DNA of 64,000 bases from Lepidodermella squamata (GCA_047495785.1 JBLDXI010000075.1:1-64000); one strand, 5' to 3'; counted from the stretch's first letter, positions 19,004 to 61,941 are shown. Notes: generated by a model from the sequence alone, not told the origin. Translations and numbers: made by a program.

Positions 19004-20965
19004 TATGAAATTATTGAGTAAACGATATCAAAGCTGGTTTAGTGTCCGGTATATCTGCTTATCTCTCACGTTGACCGTGCTTTTGTTACACCTGTTGTGG
19101 CCGTTTTTCTGCGCGTTTTGCGACCGCGTTTTCGGGACATGCTTCAAGTGCAGCGTTTTTGAGCAGAAAATTCGAGAGGCGGACGGCCTGAGACCACGGC
19201 TGATCGGCCTCCTGTCCGCGTCCTTATTCACCCTGAACAGCTTACAGAATGCTGGCGAGTTGGCTTATTTTCTGTTTGGTGACACCCTCCTCGGTTATTA
19301 TCGCCACAATTCAAAATTAATTCCGTAAGTATTTTTTTTTTATTTATGAAAAAAATTATTTTTGAAATTTAAAAGGTGGGATAATACTCTTCAGTTTGCT
19401 GTGGTTACCTTCAACCACGGGGCTGGCTTGTCCTCAGTTGCGAAGCAGATTTTGAATGTCTCGAAGAATACAACGCTCGGCCGTCTTTCATTTACCGTCG
19501 ATTCAAAAGCCTGGACAATCACGTTTCAAGACCGCGATTCCAGCGTTCGAATTCAAGTCATGAGCTTTACTCCCGAAGAAACTCTCGTCGACATGAGCAG
19601 AAATATTTCGGTAAAATTCTGAATTTTAAATTTTAATTAATTTGAATAATCTAAATAATTATCAACAATTTTAAATTTTAAATTAAAATGTTTCCGATTT
19701 TTTTAGTATCCCGCTGATCTTATTTTGCCGCTAAAACAAGTTACCTTCGAGCAACACTTCAGCGCCTATGTCCCGAGCGACGTCATCGGAACAATCGAGC
19801 GCAGTAAAGTTAATCCTTACATTTGCCGAATAGACTCGAAGTCCTCAATACCCTGCCGTAAATTGCGCCATCTAATCGGAAATCTGACCAATTTGCCACT
19901 TATCGAAGACCGCCAACTTTGCCCGGCGCACAGTCGATTTTTGAAAAGTGACCCTGAAATGTGCGCATTTTTGCCGCAAATTACTGGCAAAGAGCGCCGG
20001 TCTATGGTGGATTTACTCGCGGTCTGCATTGATGTCCTCGATGAAATGAATAGATCGGATTCGAAATATTTCCTATATTCTGGGTCGCTACTCGGCTATT
20101 GGCGCCATAATGGCTCTATGATACCGTGGGACGACGATGGTATGTCAAGAAAAATTGAAAATTAAAAATTAAATTCGAAATTTTTTTTTTATAGTTTTTA
20201 ATAATTTAAAAAAAAATTAGTTTCATGATTTTATATTATTTTATTTAATATTTTAATATTTTTTTGAATAATTTTTTAACTGGAGATTTTTTTAAATCGG
20301 TATTTTTGTTTTGTAGCCGATATTGCATTTTTGCCGACCAATCGAACCCGGTCGTTTGAGTCCTATGTCGATGAGATGAATTCGATATTAGCTAAACGCC
20401 ACCCTAGCGGTTACGAAATGCTGTACGTGCCTGAGTCGAAACGCGTCAAATGTTTCGGAACTCGAAGCGACAACTCTGTTTTGGTCGGCCAAGGCGATGA
20501 AGAATACCCGTGGCGGTGGCCATTTGTTGACATCGATTTTTTAACGGCCCGATATTCTTGGTCGTTGAACTCCGGCGGTAAGCCAAAAATCACGAAAATC
20601 AGCCAGGCGCATGGATATCATGAATTTAGGGTTCGTTGAAATGTTCAATTAAAAAATTTAAATATAATTTTTCTTATTTTCTCCAGTACCCAGCTTCTAT
20701 TGTTCTGCCGCTAAAACGTGCCTATTTTGAGTCGATATCAGTCAATGTACCACATGATGTCGAATCAGTCTTAAAACGAACTTACGATCTCGATCAATGC
20801 GTTGGGACATCTTACAAGTAGGTTGAGAAAAAAATTGAAATATGTTCTCTAATTTTCCTTTATTTTTCCAGTCATCGATTCGAGCAATCCTTTCAAAAGC
20901 TCAACGTAAAGAGACCTTGCCGAGAAGTTGCGAAGGCTCACGGTTACTACCTTACGAACATCTGA
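19004..20965 (+). CDS. Tandem LicD/fukutin-family protein A (type II membrane; degenerate + intact domain)
   Basis: Exons 19004-19324, 19376-19610, 19707-20139, 20317-20630, 20687-20817, 20872-20965. N-terminal TM. Motifs GDTLLGYYRH..IPWDNT, GSLLGYWRH..IPWDDDADI and WPFVDI. Ends YYLTNI. Confidence 0.85.
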
Positions 20966-23607
20966 CCATAGCCGTTTGTGCTTCCATGCATGTGTATCGA
21001 AAATTTCTATGCAAATTCTGGGATCTGATTTTTTTCTACTTTTTTCTACGAAATGTTTCCGCTAAAAATAAACAAGAGAGGCGCAAAAATGATTGTGTGC
21101 CCGGATTTTTTGTGATATTATAGTGATTGCACCGAGAGGCCGCCAGCCTAGCAACTGTTACCAAGGAAATCAGGCGGAAGTTGGGCGTGAAACGTCTCAT
21201 TTCGGAAACAGCGACGCGATAGCTGAAATAAATCGATCTAAAGACGTATTAAATGAATTCGTGATAAAAAATCAAGCAAACTGAATTTTTCAAAATTTAT
21301 TTGCAATGGAATTATTACTGCGAAGCCTAATTAGTTCTGCAGCGTAATTTAAAAAAATTGAATTTTAGAATTTATCGATATCGATTGCTCAAAGCGCTTT
21401 GTATTGTTTACTCGAGATTTTAAACAAACAGTTCGGGATTAATTAATATCCTTTTGCTATAGACATTGATACGCGTCACACATTACGTGCTGAATTCTTA
21501 GTAATGCCTGCGCTCAAATCGCTTGTCGCGCGACCTGTCTCCTGTATCCGCTATTATTACTATTATTATTATTATTATTTTAATTAAATGAATTTAGAAT
21601 AATATTATTATTCAAACAATGTATCATGTATCACATTATGTGAGAATACCTGCGTATTCGATGCATATTAGCTTTCGATCGATTTCACGTCTAATTCCTC
21701 ACACATCAATGCCTCGTTCGAAAATAACATTTTCACTGATATGCCAGGTTATACGGCAAATTTTAAACTGAAAAATTTCCCTGCATCATCACCGTTTTTA
21801 GCCATTTCGCCAAGGCAACCACGCAAAAAAGTGACATTGACTAGGTGAGACATCACGCAACATCGCCATTTTTTTCATTTTAATTGATAGAAAACTTTAT
21901 ATGACCTTATCGATAATTCAGAGCATCAGTCTAGAGCAAAATTTAGTCTCTGAATTTCGTTTAGAAATTTCGCTTTCTCAATTCGCACTAACAAATTGTG
22001 ATTACAGCAGAAATATTTTTTTAACTTAATTATTTTTTGAGAATATCGCCAAATGTCCCGCGCACTTCATCATCGGTATATTTAATTTCCGCCCTAATAA
22101 CATGAGTGGAAAGGCTCACATTATGTCAATTTTGTAGTTCACCTTGAAAATTGTAACGAGCCTATTATTTAGTGCGCTAATAATACTATACGTTCCCAGG
22201 TAAAATCATCTATTTATAATTCGCTAAAATAATGTTATGGCTTATGGCTTTGTTCTGATCTCAAGAGACAATAGCTCACAGGCTAAGAAAACTATAGTTT
22301 ACATTGTAAAATACGTGATGTCTCAAAAACAATCCCATATTTGTTGCAGCTGAAATTGTGTAAAATTTTTCCAGAAATTATTTACTCGCCTGAAATATCA
22401 TACTGCGTCATTCAAGCGGTATTTTCCTTGTGTGTTAATAAATGCATATGCTCCTTTTTTGTATAACAAACACGCGTGCGCGCGCGGGCACCCCTGTTAC
22501 CGCAAAAATTACCGGGTTTATTATTCTATACGTACGCGCAATAAATATAATGTGAAGTGCACGATTCTGTTGTGTGTTCAAGTTTGACTTGTTTTTCGAC
22601 AACATTACTTCAAAGCGTACTTGTTGGCCCCCTGTTTCAACGACGTGGAATTTTTTGATTCATTGATATATTATTATTACGGGAAAAATCCGGGTGTGGA
22701 TTTGGTTTGATTTATATTACTATATACTTTTTTAGAATACATGGAATTCGCTATTATTTTATTTTATAGGCAATAAATCGCTTCTGTCATTCATAAGCTA
22801 CTATTGACTGAGGAAACGTGACTAGATTTTCTTGAAAGTGCTGCTTAGGAATTTATTATTCAAGAGTGTAGTTAAAAAGTCCGCCTTAAAAATTATATAA
22901 TTCTCATTTATTTCTCACACATTTTTTGCATCGCAGCAATTTTACGCGAGACTGACTTGGCGAGATGCAAAACGTTGGTTCCACGCTATTTGTTTCTATT
23001 CCAGGAAATTCGTTCTGTTGCCCAACCCGCTAAAGACCAAGTGCCGCTTTGAGTTTTATAATTTATCCCGGGTTCCGAAAATGTGTGGGCTCTAATTTGC
23101 TAACATCTCAAATAACCGGGTTTCCTATTCACGCAGTGCGTTCCCAAAATGAATAGTAAATTGGTGATATCATGCGCTTAGCAACGCCTCCGACTGAAAG
23201 AAATTCTTTTATTTTTACATCGCATCGTAATTATTAGCACCAATTAACAGCGTCGACATTGTGGAATATTATTGCAGGCGTAACCTAATTTTTGTTAGGT
23301 CAACGAGCAGCCTCATTCATTATTACACGTGCTAGATTTGTCACGCTAATAATAATAATAAAAGTGGCTTGCAAAAACGTTGCTCATAGGCTGCGAAAGG
23401 AAATGAAATAAGTCAGCAAACTTCCGTTATACCTAGAATTTTTGTCAACGCCATTGTTTATAAACAACCTCTTCAAATAAACAGCACAGACTTTTACCAA
23501 TCAGGCTCTCTCTGTATAATAAGTGTTATTGTTTTTGTTTTCGCCTTTTATAAATAGATTGATTTTGGACGCATGCATTTCTGCAATTATTACCACCTGC
23601 AAAATTT

Positions 23608-26600
23608 ATGGTCTTACTAAGAATTGATGGCAACGATTACGGCAGGAAACGGTGTTTAATTTTTGCTTGTCTCGTTTTTCTGTTAATCGCCGGCAATAGC
23701 ATCTACTCGCTGATTTACGTCGGCGAGCTCTTCTCAACTAACCACCTGCTCAAATTTATACTCAACCAAAACGACTCGACATGGCTGACTAGGTCGAAGC
23801 TGATCAGCCAGCGCTATTCGGCTGTTTTCGCGGAGTTATCGAAATTTGACCTAGTTCTGGACGCATCGCCTTCGATCAAGAGTCAACAAGAAGAAATTGA
23901 TCGGTTATGGAATTCCGCAGCGGTTAGGCACGCGCGATTTTCGAAACTTCTGACCCCGGCTCGGATATCGGCTTTCACGAATTATAACCGATTTTTCGGC
24001 ATCGACAACGCAAATTTAACGCAGCCTGATTATTACTACTGTGGCGCTGATGGCGACGAGACAAATTTTCGCAATCTTGACGCCGATAAAGCGAGGCATT
24101 ATTTTGAAATGTGTGTTTTCAAACGGCAGTTGTTGGCCGGCGAGCAGAGGAGAACATTGGCGGATTTGTTGGCGAAATGTACGGCGGTGTTGAGCCGATT
24201 CGATGCAGCTGGCTACTTTTTGTACGGAAATTCGTTGTTGGGGCATTATCGGCACAACCATTCCATGATTCCGTGAGTTATTCTGTTATTTCCTTTCAAG
24301 TTGAAAAATATGAAATTAACGAGCATTTCTCGAATCTATTGGGGCAATTTTAAAGATTTTCAACAACTTCAAGCATCTCGCCAAAATTAAACCATAAATA
24401 AATTGGCTGTAATACAGCGTTTCCCATAAGTTATATGTAACCATTCGTAATTTTGGAATGTTTTTAGGAGTTTGAACTAATTTTTAGAAATTAAGTTCAT
24501 TGCGGGAATCTTCCATCCTTTATCCACGATTATACCTAAGAAATTGAAAATTTACTGGAGAAACCCCTGAAAACCCCGATGGTAACTGGCTCGGTAATAT
24601 TAAATTATTCATTCTGGGAAAACTTGAAAAATTCGATAAATGATTAAACATTTAGAAGCGCAAAAATTAAGTGTCAAAGCAAAGTTCCCAAATTACACCT
24701 AAAAGTTCCAGTTGAAGTTGACGGAATTTTGTTACTACGAAATTTGTAGGAATAGTATTTCGAAATCATGTATCGAGACTAAAGATACTTTCCACCTTAA
24801 TAAGAAATCATTTCTGAAGCTAAAATTTTTCACATAATGATTAGACATAATTTCACAGCGTAATAGCATTTAGAATGAGGCAAAGTCATCTCCGTCTTGA
24901 AATCCAATGCCGACTTATATTTCTGTCACTTGCGAGGCTCTCGCTTAAGCGAATTTATGGGTGGGCCAGATGAATGTGAAATGTGACAATGTGCGCGAGA
25001 TCTGTCAATTTACGATGGTCCGGTGCCGCCTGAAGAGCGAAGTCCACCAGGCTAGTCAGGGCGAACGTATCTTTATATCGCCTGCGCTGCCACTACCAGC
25101 CGCATTTCATCAGGGCAGCGGGAGACGGGAGACCGAGATGAAGGAAGTATTGCTAACCTCTTCTTGCATAGCCGTAGGCATAGCTTCTCAGCGTAGTCCG
25201 TGAGCTTTCTACTTGTCAAGAACAGTGATGATTCATCAACCTTACCAGAAATGACAAATTCTTGCTCGAAAATCACTCCAAGTCGCTGTTTGGTTGTTGG
25301 GCCTTGGTCTTGCGTTTCTTCGGCGGAACATTCACAAGATCCAGTGGAGATGATGGATATTAAAGGTAGAATCTGTCGAGCCGGCGTTGACGTAGAAACG
25401 CCACCAGGGCCGGGTGAGAGCTCAATTGTGTGAGCAAGAGGGTACCAAACCTTCTGTACCATGTTCCAGCGACCTTCAACTTCTTTGCTCAGAATAGTAA
25501 TTATTTGAAACTACGCGCAGCTCTTTCACCAGTTGTTTTTTCTATGACCCACGCGGCTAGCGCTAACTTGGTTTTCTCAGCTCCTTCGACGCTAAGTAGG
25601 ACGTGATCCGGAGGCGCATCAGGCCTTTGAAACTTTGAAACTACCGTATTTTATCCCACAAGTAGAGATGATCATGGATCCCAATTGGTGTCTAGAGCTT
25701 GTAAAAAGATGAAAAAGCTTTCGATCGATAGTAGATGGCACATTTTATTTTATCGACTCTTTAGCCTAAATAACAGTTCTGGGACCGGTATTCCATTTGA
25801 AACTTCAAATAGTTGCGCAAGGGTAATGGAAGGTAAGGTTTAAGTCCTTCGTCGATTGCCGCCATTCGACTCACGTAACCTATCGGTAAGCTATTGAGCA
25901 CAGCCATGCGAGCCATGAATTGCAATCGCATGGGAAAGACAATGTGAGCAGAAGATCTCGCCAGTTCATTTATTTCCTGACTCTCATGACTCTCGAACTC
26001 CTCGTATGACGAGTCGCGCTTTGTCGATAGTAAAAGATCGATAAAGTCGACCTCATAGTCGTAAATCGGAAGACGATTCGCAGCAGTTGCTAGCCTAGCT
26101 ATTGCGACTAGTTGGTAATACGAGTGAGACGTTCTGCAACCTGCTAGGACCATTGACTTGATAAAAGTGACCACTCTTGAGTCGTCTTCGCCCTCGGCAA
26201 TCGCACTGATTCTACTCGAAACCAAGTCAAGAGGTGATTCCAAATAACCGGACCTCGCAGCTTCTTCTGATAGACGCGCGAGGCATTCCGTTTTAGGGCT
26301 AATGACTAGCCAAGATGCCATATCGAGCTCGCCAGCATGAACCATCCACGTCAAAGTGTGATCACCCCCATGTTTGACGAGCTGTTCACTGTTTTCGAGG
26401 TCTAACAGCTTCATTATGAGATCTTGTTTTCCTTCGACGCAGGCGTACGTCAAAATTGTGTAGCAAGTGTCCCTTTCGATCTCCAGCAAATTAGCTCCAT
26501 TTTTGATCAGCGTCATCAATGCATGGTCGCTGCAGGATGAGCGAAATGCCCGGCATAAGGAGCCAATAACGCCGAGTTCAATCAGCTCCTCTGCAAAGAT

Positions 26601-29600
26601 TGTGTTATGATCGGCGAATGCTTTGTTCAGATAGGACTGTAGGAATTCGGTCTTCAACAGCCCGGAATCGATTCTCAATATTCTGCTGAGTTTGGAGTAG
26701 CTTGAGTTGACGTGGCCATACTGCAAGTTACGTAGAACTCTTCTGATACCACAACGTCTTACCGGGCGAGGGAACCGAAAGTAGTGATGGCTGAGTTCAT
26801 GATCGGTTTCGCATTTGTCGAAAATAGCTAGAAACCTGCTGGTTTGGCGATGATCTTCATTCCGATCTTCCTTTGCTTCGACAGTCGTAAAATCAAAATC
26901 AAAATCCATGTGTAAGCTTAAATATTTGCGCTATAAGTGATAACATATGAAGAGTGGAGCTGTGGTATTAGGTCGTGTATATACCTATTTGTTTAAAACT
27001 GACGCAATACGTAATAAGGCATGGCATGATTCATCCCGTATGCAAACATCAATGCGCATGATTCATCATATTGATTATTTGGTGCGTTGGTAAAAAAGGC
27101 TTAGGAATATCTAAATTATGCGTTGGAGAATAGAAAGTAATAGCTGTAAGCTGTGAAGCAAATTTTGAAATTGTAGTTTAATGGTTTAGTTTAATAGAAC
27201 ATCTATTAATTTATGTTCTATGTATATGCTAACTATTAAGGTTGTCAGGATGCGCCAGTGTTGAACGGGATTTACAATCATTAAATCATTCATTATTTGA
27301 CTGAAGAAACGTAACAGCAAACTCACTGGAGGTGAACGTTATCTATCAATTCTTTTATAGGTGGGAAAATGGTATTACTCTGGCAGTTTTTTCAATCGAT
27401 TCTATTTTCGACTACGCTCCCGAGATGTTGGCGCGATCTCTCCTCAGTTTCATTAACAAGTCAAAAAGTCGTAGGAACTCCACGTTATCGATTTCTTACA
27501 ACCCCAAACGCTTTACGATTAAACTGTTTGAAGCCGAATCTGCCAAAGCTTCGCTGGATTCTTCATATGGTTCAATAAATGCAAGCAATCATAGCAGCCT
27601 AACTGAGAACCCTCAATGGCCATACATCGAGATTCAAATTCTCAACGTGACTCGCAATGTGGACGGCTCCATTTCTGGATTTATCGACCCGAATCGGCCT
27701 GATACTACCATACCGGCTGATTATATTATGCCTTTAAAACGCAGTCATTTCGAGCAGGATGCGGCAAGCATACCGAATGACAGCCTCGGCCTTATTGAGT
27801 TGACCTACGGCAATCCCTACGTGTGCTGGTCACGTTCGTATGAATATCTTGAAAATCGCGCCCTAGTTCAATTCTCATCGCCATGCCATCAACTGCGACC
27901 CTATGTCATTCCCGCTTTTACGAACTTGCCATTTTTCCAAGACGAAAAGCCATGCAACCTCTCTGAAATTCTGGTCAATGTTCAGAATCTAACGGCTGAG
28001 GATCCGAATCTTTGTGCATTTACATCCGCTTTCACGCCACAAGAAAAGGCGAGTTTCGTGACAACCTTGGCAATCTGTTTGGAGATTATTGAGCAGTTAA
28101 CTGACGCGGCTTATTTCTTGTATGGTGGCACACTGATTGGCTACTGGCGGCATAATGGCACGATTATTCCATGGGATGATGACGGTAAGTTGTTCTTTTA
28201 TGTATTCGATTTCAAACTACGTTATGTGGTTTTAATCAATGGAAAATACAGACAGGGAAAAAGACCATTAAGACCACATTTTACGAGAAAAAAACGCTTT
28301 TTCGTTGAGGTCAGATAGTACCGATTACCAATGCTCCATATTTCATATTTCAACAAGAATAAGTTTTAAAAGGGTGCTAATGCTTAATCACCAGTGTCTG
28401 CAGCTTATCAGCCCAGACAGGGTAGAAAATGATTGCGAAACTGCTGAATGAGTAAGCGATTTCCAGGCACGCCAGTGTAAGCAACTGATGCATCCACTTG
28501 TTGACTACTGCCATTAGAAAGAATCCCCCTCCAAACATTGTTGCGGCATTTAAGACTGCAATCCTTACGGTGGAAACATCTAAACGAAACATTGCTTGCG
28601 TGATAAGTATTTTGGTTTCGAAAAGCCGAGCAGTAGAGATCACTAGCAATATCAGATTGAATCCAGCGAACCCTGCGGACCATGCTGGTAGGTCTTTGGC
28701 GTAGCATCTCTCCGAAGTATTCACGAAGTAGGTGTCAAGTTCGTAATCAAAGGAAATTGCGCTAGTTTCTTTCGCTTTTGTAATCGGATCAGAAACTAAG
28801 AGCCAGATTAAGAGAAGGATAGTGCACATGATTGTACTGCTACCAACTACCCTTGTCCCATTGATTGCCATGCGCTTTGAGGTTTGCAAATTATTGGAGG
28901 GTTTTCTGCCTTTAGTAAAGTGCCGATGAAATTTCGACCTGATAGATCCCGTTTCCCTCCTCCGCTGCTCCGTTAGACTCACTAATGTTAGCGATCTAAA
29001 GCATAGTACACTGTTTATAACAGAAAATCCCATCACTGGAAGAATAGCTATCCAGGAGCATTCATTTATCGGTCGAATTTGGACAAGTACGGCTATATCG
29101 AGGGTGATGCATCCAAATGCTATGAAAAGACCTCCAGGGAAGTCGAAAAATACAGCGAAACATGGGGTTTTTGATTCGCAAACGAAGATAACGCACGCTT
29201 TAACGACGACGCCAATTTTAACAATCACTAGGACTGCAGTGATGGAAGAGAGGATTATTATGACCTCTGATGGCATCTGTAAGCTGACGATTTCGATTTG
29301 GGACAAATCATTCGGCGGTAATCCCGATCCAGTGGCCCAGAGTGGCGATATGGGAAAATCCCAAAAGGGCTCTATCGCAACATTTGATAAATTCAAGCTC
29401 CCGTGATCCGGATCTTTAATGAAAACGTTAAAAATATGAAGGATTGTTCTGTTGACGAGCTGCGATATGGATTGATTTTCGCTGTCAACCTCCAGTCTAG
29501 GCGAGAAATTGATGCGACTCGCTCGGACCGTTGAGATGTTCAATTTAGCTGCAGATTGATGCAAAACTTGGAATACCAACTCAGGTTTACTGCGGTAGTC

Positions 29601-32139
29601 AGCTAATGATAAGTTATAGTGATTTCTTAGTTTGTAATCTGTCGTGTTTAGCGTGAAGATAGCAGCCATCATGACATCTTGACAGAAGAGCCTGACGCCA
29701 TAGTCTGCAACTTCTTTACCGGGCCTACCAACAGCTGTACTAAGGCGATCTTCAAATTCGGAAACATTGTATCCTAGACTGCTTTTTCCGCTAAAAACAT
29801 TTGCATATACTTTTGTGAGTCCGATCCAAAATGTTGCTCGCATTTGTGGTTCAATCATGTCGTAGTTCGAGCACTCAGCAGGAAGTCGTGAATTGCTAGT
29901 TAGAGCGCAGCTGTAAAGTGCCACGAACAAGTAATGAGGAGGCGTGGCACCAGTTTTGTAAGTCTGGCACCATAAACGGCGGCAGAATATTAATTGCATG
30001 GTCGCGATGAAATAAATTCTCGCATCGCCCGACTTTATTTCGTCAAGATAGTCCGTAGTGGTGAAATCAACCGATACAACTGTTGTAACTACCTTTATGC
30101 CGCTATCGCTCGCAATTTCAACGAAATATTTTGCAAGACTATAATCCTCAAGACGCGTCGAAGTTATCACTCCAACTTGTCGCCATTTTCCTATCTCAGT
30201 CATGAATTTGATCGCTGCGTAAATGACATTTTCCATGGGTATTTGAGGTCGGAAAAGGGCTGCACGGGTGTTCCGTTGAGTTAAAAAATTGATAGCTCCA
30301 CAACCATAGGAAAAATGTATCGATTTGTAAAATTTGAACAATAAGGATGAAAACTGGCAATTGACCTGCTGGCCCACAAAAACTGGAGCTAGAAATGTTT
30401 TGCTGTCGGAGTAAGATCGATCAGACTCCATAACGTTGATTACGCTTGGAATAACGCCAATTCCATCGACTGCTTCGTCCTCAGGCTGGATTTCGAGGTG
30501 GTAGTCAGGCAGAATGTCAGGCCTTCGGTTCGCTTCGTCTACTGCGATACGATAAGACGCCAGACAAATAGTGCCGTTTGTTTGCTGTATGTAGTTGTTT
30601 AGTGAGATGAAGCTAGGTATCCTGAGAACGTTTGCTCTGTTTGCAAAAAGTGGCTCAATTGTTAGACTAGCGGCGACTATCATTTTAAGAATGTTCATCA
30701 TCTTGCTGAACTAAGCCGTGTGAGCAACGCGTAAGTCATCAGTTGTTGTCGACTGTTTCACGCTGGCTAATTTAGTAATCTTCTCGATGCCAACCTTTTT
30801 CAAGTGTTAGAAAGCAACGTCGGTTGCAACTCTAATTAGCATTGACCTCTCCCACACAACTTTGAACAACACATTCGAATCATGACGACGAGGTCGTTCG
30901 ACCAGTTAGGAATTATCCATCCTGTACTCGCACGTGAAAGATTGTCTATTTAGACAGCTAATTTGCTAGCTCAAGATAAGTCTATATAGACACTAGACAA
31001 GAGTTCTACCTGCTTTATGACTTGCTGTAAAAGCGCAATAATAGCTACTTTAGATTAAACTTTTCTTGTTGAAGTACCTGTGTAAAATTACGGTCAAGCG
31101 GCCAGAGTGCTTTCAATAGATCGTTCGTATCGTGAATAAAGTTCCCAAGTGACATTTCTTCGGAAATCGTTAGTCTCCTGAGTCGATGTGCATCGAAATT
31201 TCATTGTGAATTAAATACGGGTAGAATTAACGCCGGAATCTATCTAAAATTGAGTGAATTTATTAAATTAGAGTTGAGAAACCAGATCAATTTAGAATAA
31301 ACACTTTTTTCGTATCCTGGAAAAATATGAAAAATTCACTTGGCACCTTTATTCGCGATACCAACGAAATATCAACCCGCTAGTCGTAATCACGTCTACC
31401 TCATTCGAATAAGATCGCTTGTGACTGCGAAACCCGACAACTTCCTATCACCCACTTTGATTTATACCTGGTTCTTACCTATAATTAAAACTAATTTTGG
31501 TTTTTGCTGCAGCTGATATCGCCTTAATTCCAATGAATCCATCTCGTGGTCCATCGTATTATGCCAATCAGATGGAGAAGTTGACGAAGCGTTACCCCGG
31601 CTACGCGATACACTACGTTGCCGACCAAATGCGCTTCAAGTTTTTCGGAACTCGAACGCACAACTCACGGGTCATCGGCCAGGGTGACTACTCGTATGCA
31701 TGGCGGTGGCCTTTTGTTGACGTACAGATCATGAAAAGTGTGTTCACGACCAAACGCAAAATCAAGGAAATAGCCGATGCAAGTGGCTACGTTTCTTTCA
31801 AATACCCTGCCTCTATGGTGTTTCCGCTTCGACGAGTCTCTTTCGAGTCGATACCTACCTACGTGCCAGCGAATACCAAAGCTGCTGTCGAGCAAAACTA
31901 CGACATTCGAGTGTGCAAAGCTGCTTATTATAAGTGAGTTAAAGAAATATGATTATTCGGTTAAAATGCTGACAATTTTCGAGAAATTCTTCGGAATATA
32001 GTCAATGTGTATGGTTTAGGTAACTTTTATTCATTTTTGCAGCCATCGTTTCGAGGAACGAGTTCCGGTGGAGAAACAAGTCACCAAGCCGTGCAGCGAA
32101 ATAGCCAGAAAGCTCGGCTATGTGATGACCAATATTTAG
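23608..32139 (+). CDS. Tandem LicD/fukutin-family protein B (hosts two nested genes)
   Basis: Exons 23608-24272, 27361-28184, 31513-31933, 32043-32139 join in frame at GT-AG sites. Motifs GNSLLGHYRH..IPWENG, GGTLIGYWRH..IPWDDDADI and WPFVDV. Ends YVMTNI. Confidence 0.85.
25761..26909 (-). CDS. Intronless ankyrin-repeat / SOCS-box (ASB-like) protein, nested in intron 1 of LicD gene B
   Basis: Ankyrin-like LIKNGANL and TILTYACVEGKQDLIMKLL; C-terminal SOCS box PMRLQFMARMAV...LPLPLRNYL. Confidence 0.8.
   Translation of the reverse strand: MDFDFDFTTVEAKEDRNEDHRQTSRFLAIFDKCETDHELSHHYFRFPRPVRRCGIRRVLRNLQYGHVNSSYSKLSRILRIDSGLLKTEFLQSYLNKAFADHNTIFAEELIELGVIGSLCRAFRSSCSDHALMTLIKNGANLLEIERDTCYTILTYACVEGKQDLIMKLLDLENSEQLVKHGGDHTLTWMVHAGELDMASWLVISPKTECLARLSEEAARSGYLESPLDLVSSRISAIAEGEDDSRVVTFIKSMVLAGCRTSHSYYQLVAIARLATAANRLPIYDYEVDFIDLLLSTKRDSSYEEFESHESQEINELARSSAHIVFPMRLQFMARMAVLNSLPIGYVSRMAAIDEGLKPYLPLPLRNYLKFQMEYRSQNCYLG
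28377..30701 (-). CDS. Intronless class C (GABA-B-like) GPCR, nested in intron 2 of LicD gene B
   Basis: 774 aa: signal peptide, Venus-flytrap start AVDEANRRPDILPDYHL, no Cys-rich domain, seven hydrophobic helices (WLLVSDP in TM4, IIFYP in TM7), very short C-tail. Confidence 0.88.
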   Translation of the reverse strand: MMNILKMIVAASLTIEPLFANRANVLRIPSFISLNNYIQQTNGTICLASYRIAVDEANRRPDILPDYHLEIQPEDEAVDGIGVIPSVINVMESDRSYSDSKTFLAPVFVGQQVNCQFSSLLFKFYKSIHFSYGCGAINFLTQRNTRAALFRPQIPMENVIYAAIKFMTEIGKWRQVGVITSTRLEDYSLAKYFVEIASDSGIKVVTTVVSVDFTTTDYLDEIKSGDARIYFIATMQLIFCRRLWCQTYKTGATPPHYLFVALYSCALTSNSRLPAECSNYDMIEPQMRATFWIGLTKVYANVFSGKSSLGYNVSEFEDRLSTAVGRPGKEVADYGVRLFCQDVMMAAIFTLNTTDYKLRNHYNLSLADYRSKPELVFQVLHQSAAKLNISTVRASRINFSPRLEVDSENQSISQLVNRTILHIFNVFIKDPDHGSLNLSNVAIEPFWDFPISPLWATGSGLPPNDLSQIEIVSLQMPSEVIIILSSITAVLVIVKIGVVVKACVIFVCESKTPCFAVFFDFPGGLFIAFGCITLDIAVLVQIRPINECSWIAILPVMGFSVINSVLCFRSLTLVSLTEQRRRETGSIRSKFHRHFTKGRKPSNNLQTSKRMAINGTRVVGSSTIMCTILLLIWLLVSDPITKAKETSAISFDYELDTYFVNTSERCYAKDLPAWSAGFAGFNLILLVISTARLFETKILITQAMFRLDVSTVRIAVLNAATMFGGGFFLMAVVNKWMHQLLTLACLEIAYSFSSFAIIFYPVWADKLQTLVIKH

Positions 32140-32884: not shown

Positions 32885-32966
32885 GCTGCTATGCCCGAGT
32901 GGTTAAGGGGTCTGACTTGAAATCAGATGCGGTCTCCGCGCGTAGGTTCAAATCCTACTGGCAGCG
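32885..32966 (+). tRNA. tRNA-Ser(TGA)
   Basis: 82 nt with long variable arm, loop CT-TGA-AA, G discriminator. Confidence 0.92.
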
Positions 32967-33329
32967 ATAACATTTAGAATTTCAGCTTCAGCTGTGAGAT
33001 ATCAAGTGATATGTGAAAGTAAAAAGCGGCACTTTCTAACGTGAATCAAAAGGCAAAAAAATACTTTTTACTATCACCTCACACCTCACATCTTCAAACT
33101 GACTTGGATTACAGTAGATCCGTGTTATTTAACAATGCTAACGATATGTCAACTTGAATGTCAAAACGCAAGAGTGGTTAATTCGCAATCCGATTCGCAA
33201 TTTGTTGCCTGAATTCACGCATTGCCCGGCACCTCTTTGGCCACCCGTAACGAATGGGCTTGTCGCTCGGCAACACGACTTGCATAGGTTTAGCAACATA
33301 GCAGCTGACTCCATTTTTGTCAAAAAAGA

Positions 33330-33403
33330 AGGTTCCGGCGGGGTTCGAACCCGCGACCTTCTGCGTGTAAAGCAGACGTGATGAACCACTACACAACGGA
33401 ACC
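33330..33403 (-). tRNA. tRNA-Val(TAC)
   Basis: Reverse complement GGTTCCGTTGTGTAGTGG...; loop TT-TAC-AC. Confidence 0.92.
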
Positions 33404-33475
33404 TGTTAACACTGAAGATCGAATACAGACCTTTGAAGTTTGAGAATTTGCCTAATTTGTTACAGTTTCAAAAAT

Positions 33476-33547
33476 TGGAGATGCCGGGGTTTGAACCCGG
33501 GACATCTTACATGCAAAGCAAGCGCTCTACCACTGAGCTACATCCCC
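33476..33547 (-). tRNA. tRNA-Ala(TGC)
   Basis: Near-identical to 16448-16519. Confidence 0.92.
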
Positions 33548-33619
33548 ATATGATTTGAAGGAACCTTAACTTTCAAATCAGTGGTCCCAAGGAAAACTGA
33601 ATTAGAAAAAATGTGGGCG

Positions 33620-36249: not shown

Positions 36250-36801
36250 CTTGCTGAACCAAGCAATTGATGTAATAATCGCGTGAATACTTAGTTGCCG
36301 TCGACGGTTTGATACGACTTGCTAATTTAGACATCTTCTGGATAGCGACCTTTTCGAAACGTGCTAGAAAGCATCGTTGCGAACGTAGAGCAGAGTGCAT
36401 GATTATGTTGATGATTGTACAATTAGCATTGACCTCTCCCCCTCATAAGTTTGAAATGCATGTTCGAAGATTGTCCCTGAGTTCGACTGAGCTAGTGCAA
36501 TCTAGCACGCAATAATGAAGGCAATAATGCACATTTCAAATATCAAGGATATAGAGGTTTAATGCGAGTTTGATCAAAGCGAGTAGATTTTACAGTCTCT
36601 CTCAGGCACGCGTTATCGTAAAGGAAGTGACAAATCTTTGGATGCTAGGTATCCTGAAAACATAAATGTAAGTAGCTAGTAAGTGACCTAGAAGGCGACT
36701 TCAAGCGGTTCACATGCTAAATTATACCATATTCGAGCCCGTTTGGATGTAATACAATTCTCAACAAGCTAAAACTATGTTTTTCCTCTTTTTATCCACA
36801 G

Positions 36802-36881
36802 CTGATATCGCCTTGATCCCGATGTACCCAGCTCGTGTTACATCGTTTTATGCCAACCGGATGGAGAAGCTAACGAAGCGT
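36802..36881 (+). pseudogene. Orphan fragment of LicD gene B exon 3
   Basis: CAG acceptor followed by ADIALIPMYPARVTSFYANRMEKLTKR, versus ADIALIPMNPSRGPSYYANQMEKLTKR at 31513; homology then stops. Confidence 0.8.
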
Positions 36882-37456: not shown

Positions 37457-37502
37457 ACATGACTTCAAAAAGCTTTGATCCTCTTTTAATGGCAACGGAA
37501 CC

Positions 37503-47500: not shown

Positions 47501-50238
47501 GCTCCCCATTTACGATCATGGACTTCGTAGAGCTCGAAACGAAACCCAATATCGGTCGAAAGACGGCGTAGTAGATCCATGCAAAAGCCAACGCAGCACA
47601 CCCAAGATCCATTGTTATGAATTTGTTGTTGTAGGGTTGATGACGAAGTTGGGCTTACGAAAGTGTAGGACGTAACAGCTCGGGGTTTTCCTGTCTCATT
47701 ACTGTAACAAGGTCATTGGGGGTCATTTTCCTAGGTAACTCGGTATACTGACCTGTAAGTTCCAACCTCGCCTTGAAGAACCAGTGTCATAGTGGCGTTT
47801 AATTCGGTTTTGCTAACAATAACTGGGGACAATCGGCAAGGAACAGCCGTCCGAGGGCAAACCCCACTGATGGGGTCCGGAGGCTCATACACCACATACT
47901 GAAGAGATTAGCAAAATGATTGAAGAAAGAATAAGAAAAGGTGACAATTACCGGAGGCTCTTCTAGAGTGGCGATTTTCAAGATTGTAGCATCAGGCCTG
48001 CCAGAAGGTGGTTTACCCGGGCCAGCTGGCCAAGTGATATCGTCCATTAGAAGCCCTAATTCTCGCGTCCACTCGCCAATCTTCTTCCACTGCCGATTTG
48101 GATCGAGATTGAGCACAGTAACTGCTCCCAGATCGGTCAATCCACTGTCGTCGAACTTCGAACTCACTTGGTCAAACATTTTCACTGGAGTCCTTTTGAT
48201 CAGTCTGTACACAAGTTGGAAAACTGTTAGCATAAGTCTTGAACAGTGGATGAAGTAGGATCCTCGAGGTGGGGGAACGTGTGGGTATTTTCAGCCCAGA
48301 ATTTATCTAACCAAAAGGTCTCCCTGTGGTTTTTTGGGTTTTTTTTAGCAGGAACTCTCGAGGAGTACGGTACCCCTAAAGTCCGGTACTTCGCACACTG
48401 GTCTTGAAAAAGAAGGTTGGAGTGAATAAGTGTGAACTGTTTGCAAAATATGGCATTTTCTGTTAAGATTAGAGGGAAATACCGTTAGACAACCTCAATA
48501 GGTAGCGTGGCCGAGTGGTCTAAGGCGCTAGATTTAGGCTCTAGTCTCTTCGGAGGCGTGGGTTCGAACCCCACCGATGCCATCATTTTTGCTGGGAATG
48601 TCCTTATTGCTGTTGCGCTTTTAATGGACCTAATTATGAAATAGCCAAAACTAATGGCAGCGGTGGGGTTCGAACCCACGCCTCCGAAGAGACTAGAGCC
48701 TAAATCTAGCGCCTTAGACCACTCGGCCACGCTACCTATTGAGGTTGTCTAACGGTATTTCCCTCTAATCTTCAAAGTGCCCCATGTTCCACATCTAACC
48801 GTTAGAACACACGGGTTCGTACATCAAGCGCACTGTTCGAAGTTCGATCCTTTCCATAATTGAGAATTCCATGTAGGTAAACTCTAAAACCCTATTTCAA
48901 TTCACTTTTGACCTAAAATCTCCTCTACATCCCGAGAAAGGGCTATCCTAAAAATCGCAACTTCTCTCTCCGTGAACGACCCCACTTAGAAAGGACTTAC
49001 TTATGAAATGTTTCGCCCCATCTCCATTTCTTTAGCGCCGAGCCATCGCACGGTATGCGCGGCGCAACTCGATCGATCGTAATATTCGGCATCTGTACAA
49101 ACTTCTCCATCGCATCCGACCACAACTTGGTCGCCGCTTTCAAAGCTTCATGCTGAACAGCCAGCGTTGTATTGTACGTAATCGCTATCGTACCAGGTAT
49201 AAAATTCATCGATGGCGTCGACCGTTCGCCAGAATCGCCGAGAACTGGCTTGGCACATATCCATAAATACTCGCCGCTTGTCATTCCCAACATTCGAGCC
49301 TCCTCGAAAATATCGTTCGAAGCGCCATGGTCTGCGAATAGCACGACAATACGGGTGTCAGTGCTGTCGCGAAGGTCCATCAACTCGCCCCGTATGACGT
49401 CACGTGACGAATTGGCTAATTTTACCACGCGAATGATACGCGATGACATATGCGATTGGTGCGAATCGAACGAAAATCGAGTGTACCGATTATCCTCAGA
49501 ATTGACAAGGTCGCGCAGTTCATTGATAAAGTACTCATTCCCGGCAGTTTGGCTCGAAACCAGGATTGAAAACCGCCGCCATTGATATGTTGATAGAAAC
49601 GCGAAAATTGCATTGGCTTGCGCTCGAGTGGGCGGAGCGATCAAAAATCGGTAATTCGTCGCGCTATTCGTTGAGGAGTCTTCAATTTCGTTCGACAAGC
49701 TCGACCAGGCAATTGTCGGTATCCCAGCTGTATCGGCTAGGGTTGTTATGAAATTAGCGATTCGAGTCCCGTCATCGCTTTGAATTGACTTATCGACCAG
49801 AATGAACATTGCATTGATACCCTCGGCGGCTCTTGAGCAGAATAAGTTTTGAGTCAGCTCGCCTAGGGACACTCCATTTGCGTAGACCGGGTTAACCCGA
49901 AGCCGGTAAGGTACCGATGGGTAATTGGTTTGCTTCCGAGTGGTTGATGTTGATGAGGTGAAATTTGCAGTTGATGACGTTGGGGATACTTTGTTCATGG
50001 TGGAAGATGTTGAACCTTTGCCAGCTGTAGTTCGTCTCGCTTGGTTGACTGCGAGAAATTGGCGCAGTTGTTCACGCGTTTTTGAGTCCGTCAACGATTG
50101 GCTGGGCAAGACGAAGCCTATTGTCACGGTGACAGGCTGGCCTTGAGTCTGGGCTATAGCTGCTTGTTGATGGAGCGGCATTTGAGCAGTGGTGGCAGTG
50201 ATGAGCGTCGAAATTGTCAAAACCGTTGATAGCTTCAT
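44587..50238 (-). CDS. Nmdar2: NMDA-type ionotropic glutamate receptor, GluN2/Nmdar2-like subunit
   Basis: Exons approx. 50238-49001, 48204-47952, 47898-47753, 47701-47361, 47309-47127, 46856-46699, 46648-46425, 46375-45955, 45701-45547, 45496-45326, 45152-44587. Motifs [60 protein letters not shown]; C-terminal PDZ-type ETNL. Confidence 0.9.
48501..48582 (+). tRNA. tRNA-Leu(TAG), one acceptor mismatch
   Basis: 82 nt, loop TT-TAG-GC, long variable arm; ends CGATGCCA instead of CGCTGCCA. Confidence 0.88.
48655..48736 (-). tRNA. tRNA-Leu(TAG)
   Basis: Inverted copy with a paired acceptor stem. Confidence 0.92.
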
Positions 50239-52728: not shown

Positions 52729-52801
52729 GACTCCGTAGCTCAATTGGCAGAGCGTCTGACTCCAGATCAGAAGGTTGCGTGTTCAAGTCACGTCGGGGTC
52801 A
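52729..52801 (+). tRNA. tRNA-Trp(CCA)
   Basis: GACTCCGTAGCTCAATTGG...; loop CT-CCA-GA; T-run downstream. Confidence 0.92.
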
Positions 52802-56000: not shown

Positions 56001-56072
56001 GGCCTAGTGGCCTAATGGTAAGGCGTCGGCCTCCGGAGCCGGAGATTGTGGGTTCGAGTCCCATCTGGGTCG
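56001..56072 (+). tRNA. tRNA-Arg(CCG)
   Basis: Full cloverleaf, loop CT-CCG-GA. Confidence 0.88.
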
Positions 56073-56143
56073 CTACTTTTTCCCCTCCTTATTCACCGCA
56101 CTGGCTCTTCTCGGAAAAGCAACGATTTGCCTCGCCATCAGCC

Positions 56144-56222
56144 GGCTTAGTAGATTAGTGGTGGAGCATCTGTCTTGTAAAAAGAAGGGCACGGGTTCGA
56201 TGTTCGATCCCCGTCTGGACCT
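56144..56222 (+). pseudogene. tRNA-Thr(TGT) pseudogene
   Basis: Homologous to 15873-15944, with a 7-nt GTTCGAT duplication in the T-loop and stem mismatches. Confidence 0.8.
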
Positions 56223-56267
56223 CGGCTTCTCTTTTTCCCAATTGAAAAAATCAGTCTTCAATTATGC

Positions 56268-56887
56268 GATGCATTTTAGGAATTACAGTAATGGACTATA
56301 TTCCCAACATCGATATCAGACTATCAATGTGTGGCGGAATAATTGAAGTCGGTAGATTAATTGAAAAACAACGGCTTAATTACCTAGGACATATAATAAG
56401 GATGGAAACGTATGTCGATGATAAGGGTGACCCGATACCACCGGGGCCAGTATACGACCTTTACAGGTGGGTAGCGCCTAAGGAATGGCAGAGACCGGTG
56501 GGGAGACCTCGAACTAGGTGGCTAGATTCGGTAGAAAGAAGTCTGAGGAGAGTGGGTCTTACAACCGAAAATATAATAAGGAAAAAACTGACGGGTCCCG
56601 TGGCAGACCTCGTAAAGATGGTAGCAATATAACCGAAATTATCGAAATAACTGTTGACTGGACATTGACCGAAACAACTGCACTAGATCGAGACGAATGG
56701 CGTAAAATTGTCGAGGCTTTGGAAAATTTTGAATTTTACAACAAAAGCAAGATACTTTCGGACGTGGGGGCGGGTGACTGATTCGTTTGGTTTGATCTGC
56801 CTTCGCCTTCCTCAAAACCCGAAAGGGTATAGGCACTCAGTCGCGGGGAAGACAAACAAATAAATCATTTTCATTTTCATTTCATTT
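56268..56887 (+). mobile_element. 5'-truncated RTE-clade LINE with 17-bp target-site duplication
   Basis: Motifs RLNYLGHIIRM, RPVGRPRTRW and ALDRDEWR; (TTTTCA)n tail; TSD TCAGTCTTCAATTATGC at 56251-56267 and 56888-56904. Confidence 0.9.
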
Positions 56888-56935
56888 TCAGTCTTCAATT
56901 ATGCCATAAGATTAGAATCGAGGGTGACCACAAGC

Positions 56936-57009
56936 GCCTCCTTGGCTCAGTTGGCTAGAGCGCCAGTCTCATAATCTGGAGGTCGTGAGTTCGATCCTCA
57001 CAGGGGGCA
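56936..57009 (+). tRNA. tRNA-Met(CAT), elongator
   Basis: Same sequence as 16017-16090. Confidence 0.93.
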
Positions 57010-57173: not shown

Positions 57174-58217
57174 TCACTCGACTTTATTCGAGCTGCTGTC
57201 GTTATGAACATAGGTCTCGTTTCCTTCCCGTCCAGATTTCTTGTTGCCCCAGATTTTCGCAACCTCTTCTTTCGAACCTGCGTACTCTCCCAGCAGCCAG
57301 TCCATCGGAAAATGAGCGGCCCCATAATTGCAGTCGAAATGTAAGTGATGCAGGGTGTGATAATAATCCCCAGACCCTGGATAGAGATGTCCGTCATGGC
57401 CTATCCAAGCACCCATTGCACAATCGACAATAACCGCAAGAGGGAGGGCAGGATGAACCCCAAGTGGAATGCACATCAACGCAGCGCTGTAGTACAAAGT
57501 CGACTCCACTGGGTGCATATTAGTCCCCGAAAACGCAGTGATGTTGTAAGACTTATGATGTAGAGAGTGAACAGCTTTGTACAGAAACTTCCCGACATCC
57601 GGGATACGGTCCGTTTTCCATGGATGCATGACCCTGTGGATGGCCCAGAAGTGGACAACCCTCCAGTGAGTCAACGTCAAAACGAGTATTACGTGAAGAA
57701 GCGGCTTCTCCATCACGGATCTTACCATAGGAAACGCTCCGATTGAATAGCAATGACATATGACGATTTCAATGCAAGCTGCGAAAACTGATGAAATAGT
57801 TGTGTAGAACATGTCGTGCTTCATCTGTGCGAATGACGGGTACTTCTGAACAATCTTGAAGTTGAACAGCTTTTCTCGGAGGGGGCCAAAGTAGAGCCAA
57901 TAATCCCAGAATCCGCAGATGAGCCATGTTCCGATCAAGTTTCGAGCGACAATAGGCCACATCCACGATAGTTCGAAGGTCGCCCCACGACCAAAAGCAG
58001 GGTAGTTTTTGCCCTCATAGAAGTCGTAAATTAGGCTGAAGGCGATTAGAAAAGACCGGATCGCGGCTCCAGCGGCTGATATATGACCTGGTGCATTTAG
58101 AACAGGAGTTGCCTGCAGGACAGGTCGAAGCTCGGATCCTTTGAGCCTCAGTGTGCTGATGATGTGAGGGATTGGCCACAGCAGAGGCGTCACGAAAGAA
58201 GACAGCAATTCGGCCAT
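57174..58217 (-). CDS. Intronless sterol desaturase / fatty-acid hydroxylase family membrane enzyme
   Basis: His boxes HRVMH, HSLHH and GHDG...HTLHH plus FSGTNMHPVE; several hydrophobic segments; 347 aa. Confidence 0.88.
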   Translation of the reverse strand: MAELLSSFVTPLLWPIPHIISTLRLKGSELRPVLQATPVLNAPGHISAAGAAIRSFLIAFSLIYDFYEGKNYPAFGRGATFELSWMWPIVARNLIGTWLICGFWDYWLYFGPLREKLFNFKIVQKYPSFAQMKHDMFYTTISSVFAACIEIVICHCYSIGAFPMVRSVMEKPLLHVILVLTLTHWRVVHFWAIHRVMHPWKTDRIPDVGKFLYKAVHSLHHKSYNITAFSGTNMHPVESTLYYSAALMCIPLGVHPALPLAVIVDCAMGAWIGHDGHLYPGSGDYYHTLHHLHFDCNYGAAHFPMDWLLGEYAGSKEEVAKIWGNKKSGREGNETYVHNDSSSNKVE

Positions 58218-60371: not shown

Positions 60372-60566
60372 TCTTCGCTAATATTTTTAACATCCTAAGA
60401 GACTCTTACGGCGACAAACCTTCAACGAGTTTAATTACAATGGTATCAATTCAGTTTCGTTTTTGAAATGAAATAATGTTCCTCGCAAGCTATTTTATAG
60501 GCAACAATATTGGGAAAATAGGATCAGCCTCCTACTAAGAAATGATAAGAAATTACTTCAAGAAAC

Positions 60567-61941
60567 TTGGATGGATACACCAGCCATTACGACTCAGAAA
60601 CCCGCATAATTAGATTTTTTGGCACGCTGCCGAATAATTCCGAACCAATCGAAGGCGTCAAGTGGCGCTGGCCTTGTGTCGAAATTCAGATCTTCGAGGA
60701 TCGCTACACCGAATCTGGTCATTTGAGTGAGATTGTGAACCCTTCTAGGCCAGAGGATTGGGTATGGGCAGTTCACTCTAAAAATTAACGATTAATGTTA
60801 ACCATTTACCATTTATTCATCTAGTACCCTTCAGCTTTGATCTTCCCGCTTGAAGAAGTGGTTTTCGAAGGTTCGCGAGCTAAAGTCCCAAAACAACTTA
60901 TGGACGTGGTAGTTCTCGACTTTAATCCAAAATGGTGTGATGCGAGAATATTTCGTTCGAAAAGCGATGCTACAATTATGAAAGATGCTCTCGTGCAATG
61001 CGAGGAAATCGAGGACTTCGTGGAATTCAGCCTTGATTTCAATGATGTGGACCGGTACTACAAAACACGGGCTAATCGTTCATGCGATAGGCACACCGCC
61101 GATCCAGCTCTGTGTTTCTTCGATCCTCAGGTAACGGAGATGCAGAAGAGCGAAATTGTCAGGCTTTCCCGAGCTTGCTACGAGGCCGTTAAAAGCATTG
61201 AAGAGGAGGCAGATCATATTCTATATTCTGGATCTTTGATCGGCTACTGGCGACACGGTGGCCACATGATCCCGTAAACTGCTTACTTCTTCATTAATTT
61301 TTCAATGTTTTGCTAATTAATTTATAGGTGGGACGACGATCACGACATAGCAGTTATACCGCGATCGAACCCAGCGAAACCAGCCGTTTTCTACGCAAAT
61401 AAAATGATTGATGCAATAAAAATATATGGTGGAAAATACGCAATGTATTTCGATAGGAGACAAATGAAGATGAAGTGCTATTTGAATGACGAGAATTCAC
61501 AAGCTGCTCCTGCCAGACCTTCCTTCCGCATTCCGTGGCGATGGCCGTTTGTCGATATCAACATAATGGAGACGCAATTTTCCAAACGGACTGGCAAGCT
61601 GTATAGGGTGAAAGAAGGAGCAGCTCATCCTCAATTCAACGTCTGTTTTGTCACCAAAAGCTGTCGCAATGAAACATATTTTCTGTCACTAATTTCAGTA
61701 TTTGGCCAAATGGATCTTCCCGACGGGGAAAGCGATTTTTGAAGGCGTGGAGGTAAACATTCCGCATGATGATGAAGAATCATTTTTGGACCGAACCTAT
61801 ACAATTGAAGAATGTGTGGCGCCTTACTACAACCACCGCACTGAAATGAGAGTTGACTATGGAGATCGCGATGATAACAAGGGACATCTCAGTAGACCGT
61901 GTTCTGAACTATTCCACTTGTATAATTTTACGAATATCTAG
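60567..61941 (+). CDS. Tandem LicD/fukutin-family protein D, 5'-truncated paralogue of C (possible pseudogene)
   Basis: Colinear with 43086-44447 with the same intron positions; WPCVEI, GSLIGYWRH..IPWDDDHDI, ends YNFTNI. In-frame stop at 60546 and no TM-encoding first exon found. Confidence 0.75.

Follow-up and report, generated by a model that had tools for sequence, protein, structure and literature searches.

Tandem LicD-type genes of Lepidodermella squamata encode a predicted pseudoenzyme domain ahead of an intact LicD domain

Why would an animal keep what looks like a disabled enzyme domain in front of a live copy of the same domain? This question is raised by a 64,000-nucleotide stretch of DNA from Lepidodermella squamata (GCA_047495785.1 JBLDXI010000075.1:1-64000, hereafter the window, with positions counted from its first letter), in which a preliminary description had noticed four paralogous genes with two LicD-like repeats each. 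LicD and fukutin enzymes put phosphate-linked groups on surface glycans, and their loss in humans leads to muscular dystrophy. We call the four genes A, B, C, and D, and their N-terminal and C-terminal repeats domain 1 (D1) and domain 2 (D2). The reading that we favor, and regard as probable, is that these genes form a family of tandem LicD proteins in which D2 is the working enzyme, D1 is a pseudoenzyme retained as a stem, and gene D is truncated but still constrained.

The window is animal DNA with short, AT-rich introns bounded by GT and AG, and all four LicD genes lie on the plus strand, over 43 kilobases (kb) of it. Exon models were assembled manually, with open reading frames, splice signals, and the similarity of the genes to one another as guides, and are as follows.

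Gene A, 19005-20965, plus strand: 6 exons, 508 amino acids (aa); exons 19005-19324, 19376-19610, 19707-20139, 20317-20630, 20687-20817, and 20872-20965.
Gene A D1, about 19152-19949, plus strand: dead motif PWDNTLQ at 19323-19394, across intron 1.
Gene A D2, 19950-20962, plus strand: PWDDDAD at 20124-20321, WPFVD at 20517-20531.
Gene A signal anchor: aa 17-35.
Gene B, 23608-32139, plus strand: 4 exons, 668 aa; exons 23608-24272, 27361-28184, 31513-31933, and 32043-32139; two of its introns are each about 3 kb long.
Gene B D1, 24100-28000, plus strand: PWENGIT at 24271-27379, across intron 1; WPYIE at 27617-27631.
Gene B D2, 28001-32136, plus strand: PWDDDAD at 28169-31517, WPFVD at 31707-31721.
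Gene B signal anchor: aa 18-36.
Gene C, 42572-44447, plus strand: 5 exons, 555 aa; exons 42572-42936, 42986-43280, 43330-43784, 43838-44150, and 44208-44447.
Gene C D1, 42764-43611, plus strand: PWHDTIK at 42935-43004, WPYVE at 43188-43202.
Gene C D2, 43612-44444, plus strand: PWDDDHD at 43783-43856, WPFVD at 44052-44066.
Gene C signal anchor: aa 8-26.
Gene D, 60552-61941, plus strand: 5'-truncated duplicate of gene C; 4 exons, 404 codons; exons 60552-60761, 60825-61273, 61328-61640, and 61699-61941.
Gene D D1, C-terminal portion only: WPCVE at 60669-60683.
Gene D D2, complete: PWDDDHD at 61272-61346, WPFVD at 61542-61556.

In each gene the passage from D1 to D2 is crossed by one unbroken exon (19707-20139 in A, 27361-28184 in B, 43330-43784 in C, and 60825-61273 in D), and A-D are paralogues of a small gene family encoding tandem LicD-type domains in one reading frame. 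These models amend the preliminary description in three respects: gene A starts at 19005, one base later than had been given; gene B runs much further than had been implied; and, while A-C are indeed two-repeat paralogues, gene D keeps only the last 60% or so of D1. The N-terminal membrane anchor ascribed to A, B, and C is present as a hydrophobic segment with a mean Kyte-Doolittle value of 2.0-2.2 over 19 aa and K/R residues before it, and gene D has none. The proteins of A, B, and C also carry 6-12 N-X-S/T sequons and 12-13 cysteines, and we predict that they are type-II signal-anchor proteins of the secretory pathway.

Three further genes, E, F, and G, with the same dead-plus-live architecture were found in a second animal represented by metagenome contigs L001-L004, at the following positions.

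L001 10001-11741: dead-plus-live LicD gene.
L001 12336-14055: dead-plus-live LicD gene.
L004 9168-10948: dead-plus-live LicD gene.

Two of these genes are in tandem and the third lies about 8 kb off, past Forkhead, HAD-hydrolase, and PH-domain genes. Between the two animals, protein identity is only about 25-45%. E, F, and G share with A, B, and C the sequence layout of a type-II Golgi membrane enzyme, with a short basic tail, a single anchor, and a predicted luminal part bearing the cysteines and sequons, a layout that gene D does not have.

Is D1 truly a LicD domain? Every copy of the repeat shows the same order of elements: a Cys-x-Phe lead-in, a helix, YFLY-G-[ST]-L-[LI]-G-x-x-RH, and IPW with five further residues, and then K[FI]F, NS, WRWP[FY][VI][DE], YPxDxIxPL...FE...VP, and a Cys...Cys tail. 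D1 of gene B matched D2 of gene A directly in tblastn (E-value 1.9e-5). An independent LicD profile, made from 104 natural single-domain LicD proteins obtained by library search and run locally, matched every full-length window protein twice. Against this profile the whole D1 gave E-values of 1e-16 in A, 9e-32 in B, 1e-31 in C, 3e-46 in E, and 1e-33 in F, the partial D1 of gene D gave 2e-21, and D2 of A-D gave 1e-46 to 1e-55. Pfam LicD (PF04991, cut-off 22.6 bits) matched D2 exon pieces of the window (29.6 bits in A and 37 bits for B exon 2, with a match to B exon 3 as well) and the full D2 of relative G (P0001, 53.5 bits), and D1 alone of relatives E and F exceeded its cut-off with 24.4 and 24.3 bits. 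In an AlphaFold2 (AF2) model of the first exon of relative E, which comprises the anchor, D1, and the start of D2, residues 60-290 had a predicted local distance difference test score (pLDDT) above 90. The best match of the D1 model in the PDB was FKRP (E-value 5.5e-9), followed by other nucleotidyltransferase-fold proteins, and its best Atlas match was a mollusc LicD cluster, with a template-modeling (TM) score of 0.76 and a root-mean-square deviation (rmsd) of 2.6 Å over 209 residues. The structure prediction that the preliminary description had called for thus gave an FKRP-like fold for D1 of relative E, the D1 domains of the window itself being placed by sequence. Taken together, the profile matches and the model show that D1 is a genuine LicD domain, with a predicted nucleotidyltransferase fold. 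Pfam scans of exon pieces and of the relatives gave no match to FKRP_N (PF22921) or FKTN_N (PF19737) at E-values up to 10, and A-D are, as judged from their domain content, not FKRP orthologues.

To place the catalytic residues, the profile consensus IPWDDDiD was aligned to IIPWDYDVD of FKRP, which is the family profile's only PDB sequence match. In FKRP, Asp362, Asp364, and Asp416 are the three conserved acids of the fold and are essential, Asp360 is essential too, and an hG[GS] motif has been defined (PMC6965139). The corresponding positions in the two domains are as follows.

First motif of D1: PWDNTLQ in A, PWENGIT in B, PWHDTIK in C.
Asp362 position: D in D2 of A-G; T, G, T, F, T, and T in D1 of A, B, C, E, F, and G, respectively.
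Asp364 position: D in D2 of A-G; Q, T, K, N, H, and Q in D1 of A, B, C, E, F, and G, respectively.
Second glycine of hG[GS]: kept in D2; D, N, E, T, T, and N in D1 of A, B, C, E, F, and G, respectively.
Third acid (Asp416): D in D2; in D1, E in B, C, D, and E, Q in F, and lost in A and G.
Third-acid motif of D1: WPYIE in B, WPYVE in C, WPCVE in D, lost in A.

All seven D2 domains retain DDDxD and WPF[VI]D. D2 of A-D carries [YL]Y[SG]G[ST]L, PWDDDxD, and WRWPFVD throughout, and the intact D2 motifs reported earlier (G[ST]L[LI]G[YF]WRH, IPWDDDxD, and WPFVD) stand in all four genes, except that four residues, not two, separate WRH from IPW. D1 retains its arrangement of cysteines and, as scaffold motifs, LLG, RH, IPW, WRWPY, and YPxDxIxPL...FE...VP; however, the equivalents of Asp362 and Asp364 are absent from every D1, so that by homology a two-metal mechanism would be impossible for this domain. 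As had been described, the aspartates are lost differently in each gene, both of these positions varying across A, B, and C, and the statement that the third acid becomes E or Q held except in A and G. The differences among paralogues in the residues that replace them argue against a new conserved active site. We conclude that D1 is, as predicted from these residues, a pseudoenzyme domain, that is, one homologous to the enzyme, without its essential catalytic residues, and under purifying selection.

The same residues can be read in another way, namely that D1 is not inert. Its pocket would then bind a cytidine diphosphate (CDP) donor, a phosphodiester glycan, or metal, and D1 would be lectin-like, allosteric, or a non-canonical catalyst; the two domains might even take two successive steps, like fukutin with FKRP or LicD1 with LicD2. 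RH after LLG, IPW, and WRWPY[VI]E are retained in D1, four of the six complete D1 domains have an acid (D or E) at position 1, and in the pairs C-D and E-F the two domains are under equally strong purifying selection. Moreover, fukutin and FKRP act in sequence, and acceptor recognition by FKRP needs a domain of the second subunit (PMC6965139). This reading has to contend with the loss from every D1 of two residues each of which is essential in FKRP, with replacements that vary by paralogue (T/G/F for Asp362 and Q/T/K/N/H for Asp364), unlike those of a new conserved site, and with the loss of the second glycine of hG[GS] as well. On balance we consider an active D1 unlikely, though worth keeping in mind, and continue to favor a pseudoenzyme.

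If D1 is a pseudoenzyme, is it being kept or lost? Nei-Gojobori estimates were made for three gene pairs, and the raw proportions of non-synonymous (pN) and synonymous (pS) differences are given where the Jukes-Cantor correction failed on saturated synonymous sites; dN/dS is the corrected ratio.

C-D pair (the part of D1 that D keeps): D1 pN 0.146 and pS 0.77; D2 pN 0.145 and pS 0.57.
E-F pair: dN/dS 0.25 in D1 and 0.23 in D2.
A-B pair: pN 0.445 in D1 and 0.331 in D2; pS about 0.76-0.80 in both domains.

For C-D, pN/pS was about 0.2 in both domains, this ratio and those of dN/dS being rough because synonymous sites are saturated. Non-synonymous change in D1 was several-fold rarer than synonymous change, and the neutral evolution of D1 that the preliminary description had named as a refutation was not what we found. 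In the tree described below, D1 branches were 2-3 times longer than D2 branches, and this, together with the low pN relative to pS, indicates a constraint on D1 that has changed or relaxed but is not gone. D1 is thus under purifying selection rather than decaying.

The origin of the two domains was examined with a maximum-likelihood tree of 65 domains (7 D1, 7 D2, and 51 other LicD domains), with support given as ultrafast bootstrap and Shimodaira-Hasegawa-like approximate likelihood-ratio test (SH-aLRT) values. D1 formed one clade (100/92) and D2 another (98/93), and the two joined in a clade (99/88) apart from the 51 other LicD domains. Two intron positions are common to D1 and D2, one at profile position 109, in phase 2 within the IP|W codon, and one at profile position 192, in phase 0 before YPxD. 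Sister clades and two common intron positions point to a single internal tandem duplication. This duplication of an intron-containing single-domain gene preceded both the divergence of the paralogues and the split from the animal of L001-L004. Gene G resembles gene A in that both have lost the WPxxD/E motif of D1.

Gene D requires separate treatment. Its similarity to gene C begins at a duplication breakpoint, 43086 in C and 60567 in D, within the exon matching C exon 2, with two stop codons just upstream. It lacks the anchor, the start codon, and the first 153 or so codons, including the LLG..RH..PW part of D1, and retains the last 60% or so of that domain. A 5' exon was sought with tblastn, with blastn, and with the profile run on all six reading frames, and none was found; nor did the LicD profile detect further LicD-like exons in the remaining window on either strand. 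Nevertheless, the frame and three introns of gene D are intact and its differences from gene C are mostly synonymous, which suggests that it is probably still used. Gene D is a truncated duplicate, still constrained, which probably uses an unrecognised 5' exon.

These losses bear on a further reading, in which D1 is a decaying remnant and mere spacer, and the genes, or at least gene D, are becoming single-domain enzymes or pseudogenes. The longer D1 branches, the loss even of WPxxD/E from A and G, and the loss from gene D of the whole N-terminal part of D1 with the anchor would all fit it, as would the following relic, which shows the region to be shedding pieces.

Relic of gene B exon 3, 36799-36882, plus strand: translates to DIALIPMYPARVTSFYANRMEKLTKR; 84.5% identical to 31510-31593; not a working gene.

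The LicD profile found no further exons at the relic. Decay is hard to square with a pN far below pS in D1 of all three pairs (C-D, E-F, and A-B), with D1 frames that, ever since one ancient duplication, have stayed intact in all seven genes of these distantly related animals, with D1 matches to the LicD profile of up to 1e-46 and a confident D1 model, and with the transcription and splicing of genes A and B. We therefore judge it very improbable that D1 is merely decaying, and return to the retained pseudoenzyme.

Evidence for splicing came from a public run, X1, whose contigs cover the exons of gene A and B exon 1 but not intergenic DNA. The contigs contained the gene A joints 19324->19376 (intron 1) and 20138/9->20316/7 (intron 3), and one contig running past 20817 held exon-6 letters with 4 mismatches in 30 (intron 5); this contig may derive from an allele or a close relative. 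Another contig ran on from 24275 with the opening letters of B exon 2, which starts at 27361 (B intron 1). The X1 contigs are short, so that no single one covers a whole gene. Genes A and B are thus transcribed and spliced, and the question of one gene or two, raised with the preliminary description, is answered in favor of one gene by the unbroken D1-D2 exon in every gene, along with the contig evidence in A and B. That the repeats are separate neighboring genes wrongly joined, a reading to which prokaryote-style gene calls that split genes on related contigs at introns might lend something, is scarcely credible: each of the seven genes encodes the last part of D1, the linker, and the first part of D2 in a single uninterrupted exon, where no stop codon, start signal, or anchor intervenes. 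In gene A this exon is covered by X1 contigs. Note that X1 contigs at 19775-19882, 20374-20577, and 22889-23040 also showed joints of opposite strands inside exons, which look like assembly hairpins.

How widespread is this architecture? A phmmer search with B exon 2 against 1.84 billion representatives gave 145 matches, with a best E-value no better than 2e-20, and the two-domain kin among them were only truncated calls for E, F, and G. Two giant proteins that phmmer listed, P0004 and P0040, proved not to be LicD proteins. Word-index searches with P0002 and P0001 yielded no further two-domain proteins. A scan of the metagenome loci found eight LicDs, each with one domain and an intact site. 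Proteins with two or three LicD domains exist elsewhere (P0003, P0021, P0136, P0140, P0143, P0026, P0043, which is triple, and P0103), so that a tandem LicD as such is not new; P0026 is from the ctenophore Pleurobrachia bachei, and most of the others are unnamed metagenomic sequences. All of these except P0103 keep both catalytic sites. In P0103 (594 aa, assembled from a public run) the first site is degenerate and reads WDHSAY, whereas the second reads WDHDAD; this protein is a possible second case. Full-text literature searches for LicD pseudoenzymes and for tandem or duplicated LicD domains returned nothing relevant. The family had been called lineage-specific, a term that does not survive the three genes of the second animal and the tandem LicD-LicD proteins elsewhere; the search of other proteomes that had been suggested did bring out kin, in that second animal only, and the architecture was absent from the searched literature. 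What stands out is an ancient and conserved dead-plus-live LicD in animals, which we did not find in that literature.

Several points weigh against the interpretation of D1 as a retained pseudoenzyme within a spliced two-domain gene, and are collected here. RH and IPW persist in D1, often together with one or two acids, so that ligand binding or a non-canonical activity is conceivable. Of the two LicD matches per protein that had been anticipated, both were obtained with our own profile; in contrast, Pfam LicD gave no match to the D1 exon pieces of the window. The modeled relative E is only about 25-30% identical to the window proteins, and the alignment behind its model consists mostly of true LicDs, which biases the model toward the LicD fold. 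The splicing of C, of D, and of B intron 2 is read from homology and GT-AG signals, and X1 was taken as RNA from its spliced joints and exon-only coverage, not from its record. To these must be added the rough selection ratios noted above.

The closest parallel to a D1 without catalysis is human FKRP (PDB 6KAJ-6KAN), a type-II protein with a C-terminal LicD-fold catalytic domain, whose Asp360, Asp362, Asp364, and Asp416 and hG[GS] motif are kept by D2. Like the proteins described here, FKRP has an enzyme-fold domain without a catalytic motif ahead of its catalytic domain. This stem domain is GT-A-like and catalytically dead; it mediates oligomerisation and recognizes the phosphate of the acceptor, and the enzyme transfers ribitol-phosphate (PMC6965139). 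The FKRP stem differs from D1 in being GT-A-like, similar to ppGalNAcT-10, rather than a dead LicD copy, and FKRP, when aligned structurally with the D1 model, shows only about 16% identity. The named relatives closest to D2 share about 30% identity with it and are single-domain LicDs of invertebrates, namely a 'LicD/FKTN/FKRP nucleotidyltransferase domain-containing protein' of the annelid Paralvinella palmiformis and proteins of the molluscs Lymnaea stagnalis and Argonauta hians, which are alike in their trailing Cys...Y.H..E...PC..L and signal-anchor layout but have one domain, with an intact DDDxD, and fall outside the D1+D2 clade. Among the tandem proteins mentioned above, P0003, P0136, and P0103 were tested, and in each its own two domains fell in one clade apart from D1+D2, indicating independent duplications. 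Bacterial LicDs, such as pneumococcal licD2 and Mf1 of Mycoplasma fermentans, belong to the same Pfam family but are single-domain and remotely related. Mf1 moves phosphocholine or phosphoethanolamine from CDP donors, and its cluster of Asp50, Asp51, Asp52, and Asp54 corresponds to DDDxD (PMC11982090). These bacterial proteins indicate the type of reaction possible for D2, not which reaction it is. Finally, the DZF domains of NF45 and NF90 (PDB 4AT7-4ATB), nucleotidyltransferase-fold domains of the NF90-NF45 dimerisation-domain complex, were among the structural matches of D1; they belong to an unrelated family of nuclear RNA-binding proteins with the domains on separate chains and serve as an analogy only. 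The NF45 and NF90 DZF domains are not known to be catalytic or to serve as more than a dimerisation surface, and are a possible analogy for the role of a dead domain of this fold.

In sum, a single-domain, intron-bearing LicD gene was duplicated internally, and D1 then lost the second glycine of hG[GS] and the metal-binding pair. D2, which we infer to be a phosphotransferase using a CDP donor, would move a phosphate-linked group from that donor to a luminal glycan by a two-metal mechanism like that of FKRP, the candidates suggested by homology being phosphocholine, phosphoethanolamine, and ribitol- or glycerol-phosphate. The role of D1 we infer, by analogy, to parallel that of the dead stem of FKRP: it would serve as a stem that keeps D2 off the membrane, it would offer a surface for oligomerisation or for an intramolecular partner, and it might bind the glycan that acts as acceptor, or a phosphate carried by that glycan.

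The genes had also been described as a glycan-decorating system. Their neighbors are tRNAs, receptor-like genes, a reverse-transcriptase ORF (open reading frame), and a fatty-acid hydroxylase, and no genes for CDP-donor synthesis or other glycan genes were found nearby. As the LicD genes are scattered among unrelated genes, they are better called a dispersed gene family, 'system' being too strong a term. Each of the two long introns of gene B harbors one unrelated ORF on the minus strand. The first of these has weak ankyrin-repeat matches; an Ank gene lies beside relative gene E on L001, but the two are not homologous, and synteny was rejected. The second belongs to a tandem segmental duplication of about 5.5 kb, whose two ORFs are 83% identical and intronless, each with an ANF_receptor ligand-binding region and a long hydrophobic C-terminal part. 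After each ORF copy come the 3' exons of gene B, degraded in the second copy to the relic of 84 base pairs, and a tRNA-Val/tRNA-Ala pair. Rfam detected tRNAs only in the window, 26 of them over 64 kb (22 according to ARAGORN), grouped in small clusters with mixed anticodons, which is unusually dense for animal DNA. These features are as follows.

25761-26909, minus strand: ORF of 382 aa with weak ankyrin-repeat matches, nested in gene B intron 1.
28377-30701, minus strand: ORF of 774 aa, first copy, in gene B intron 2 on the opposite strand.
33907-36249, minus strand: ORF of 780 aa, second copy.
31510-31593 and 36799-36882: partner segments of the duplication.
33318-33559 and 37235-37468: partner segments of the duplication.
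37503-38429, plus strand: RVT_1 ORF, probably of a retroelement.
57174-58217, minus strand: fatty-acid hydroxylase ORF.
6378-6865, 15873-16520, 32885-33548, 37244-37457, 39184-39613, 48501-48736, 52729-52801, 56001-57009, and 62191-62610: tRNA clusters.

The enzymes by which invertebrates attach phosphocholine or phosphoethanolamine to glycans are uncharacterized (PMC11982090). It is a long shot, but the family may be, or may include, the enzyme that adds such zwitterionic phosphodiesters; the dead D1 would then be a built-in partner that reads the acceptor or an earlier phosphodiester, a single-chain counterpart of acceptor recognition by two subunits in FKRP. A dead LicD copy long kept before a live one is a natural experiment on a non-catalytic partner domain, and genes A, B, and C are defined candidates for biochemical tests.

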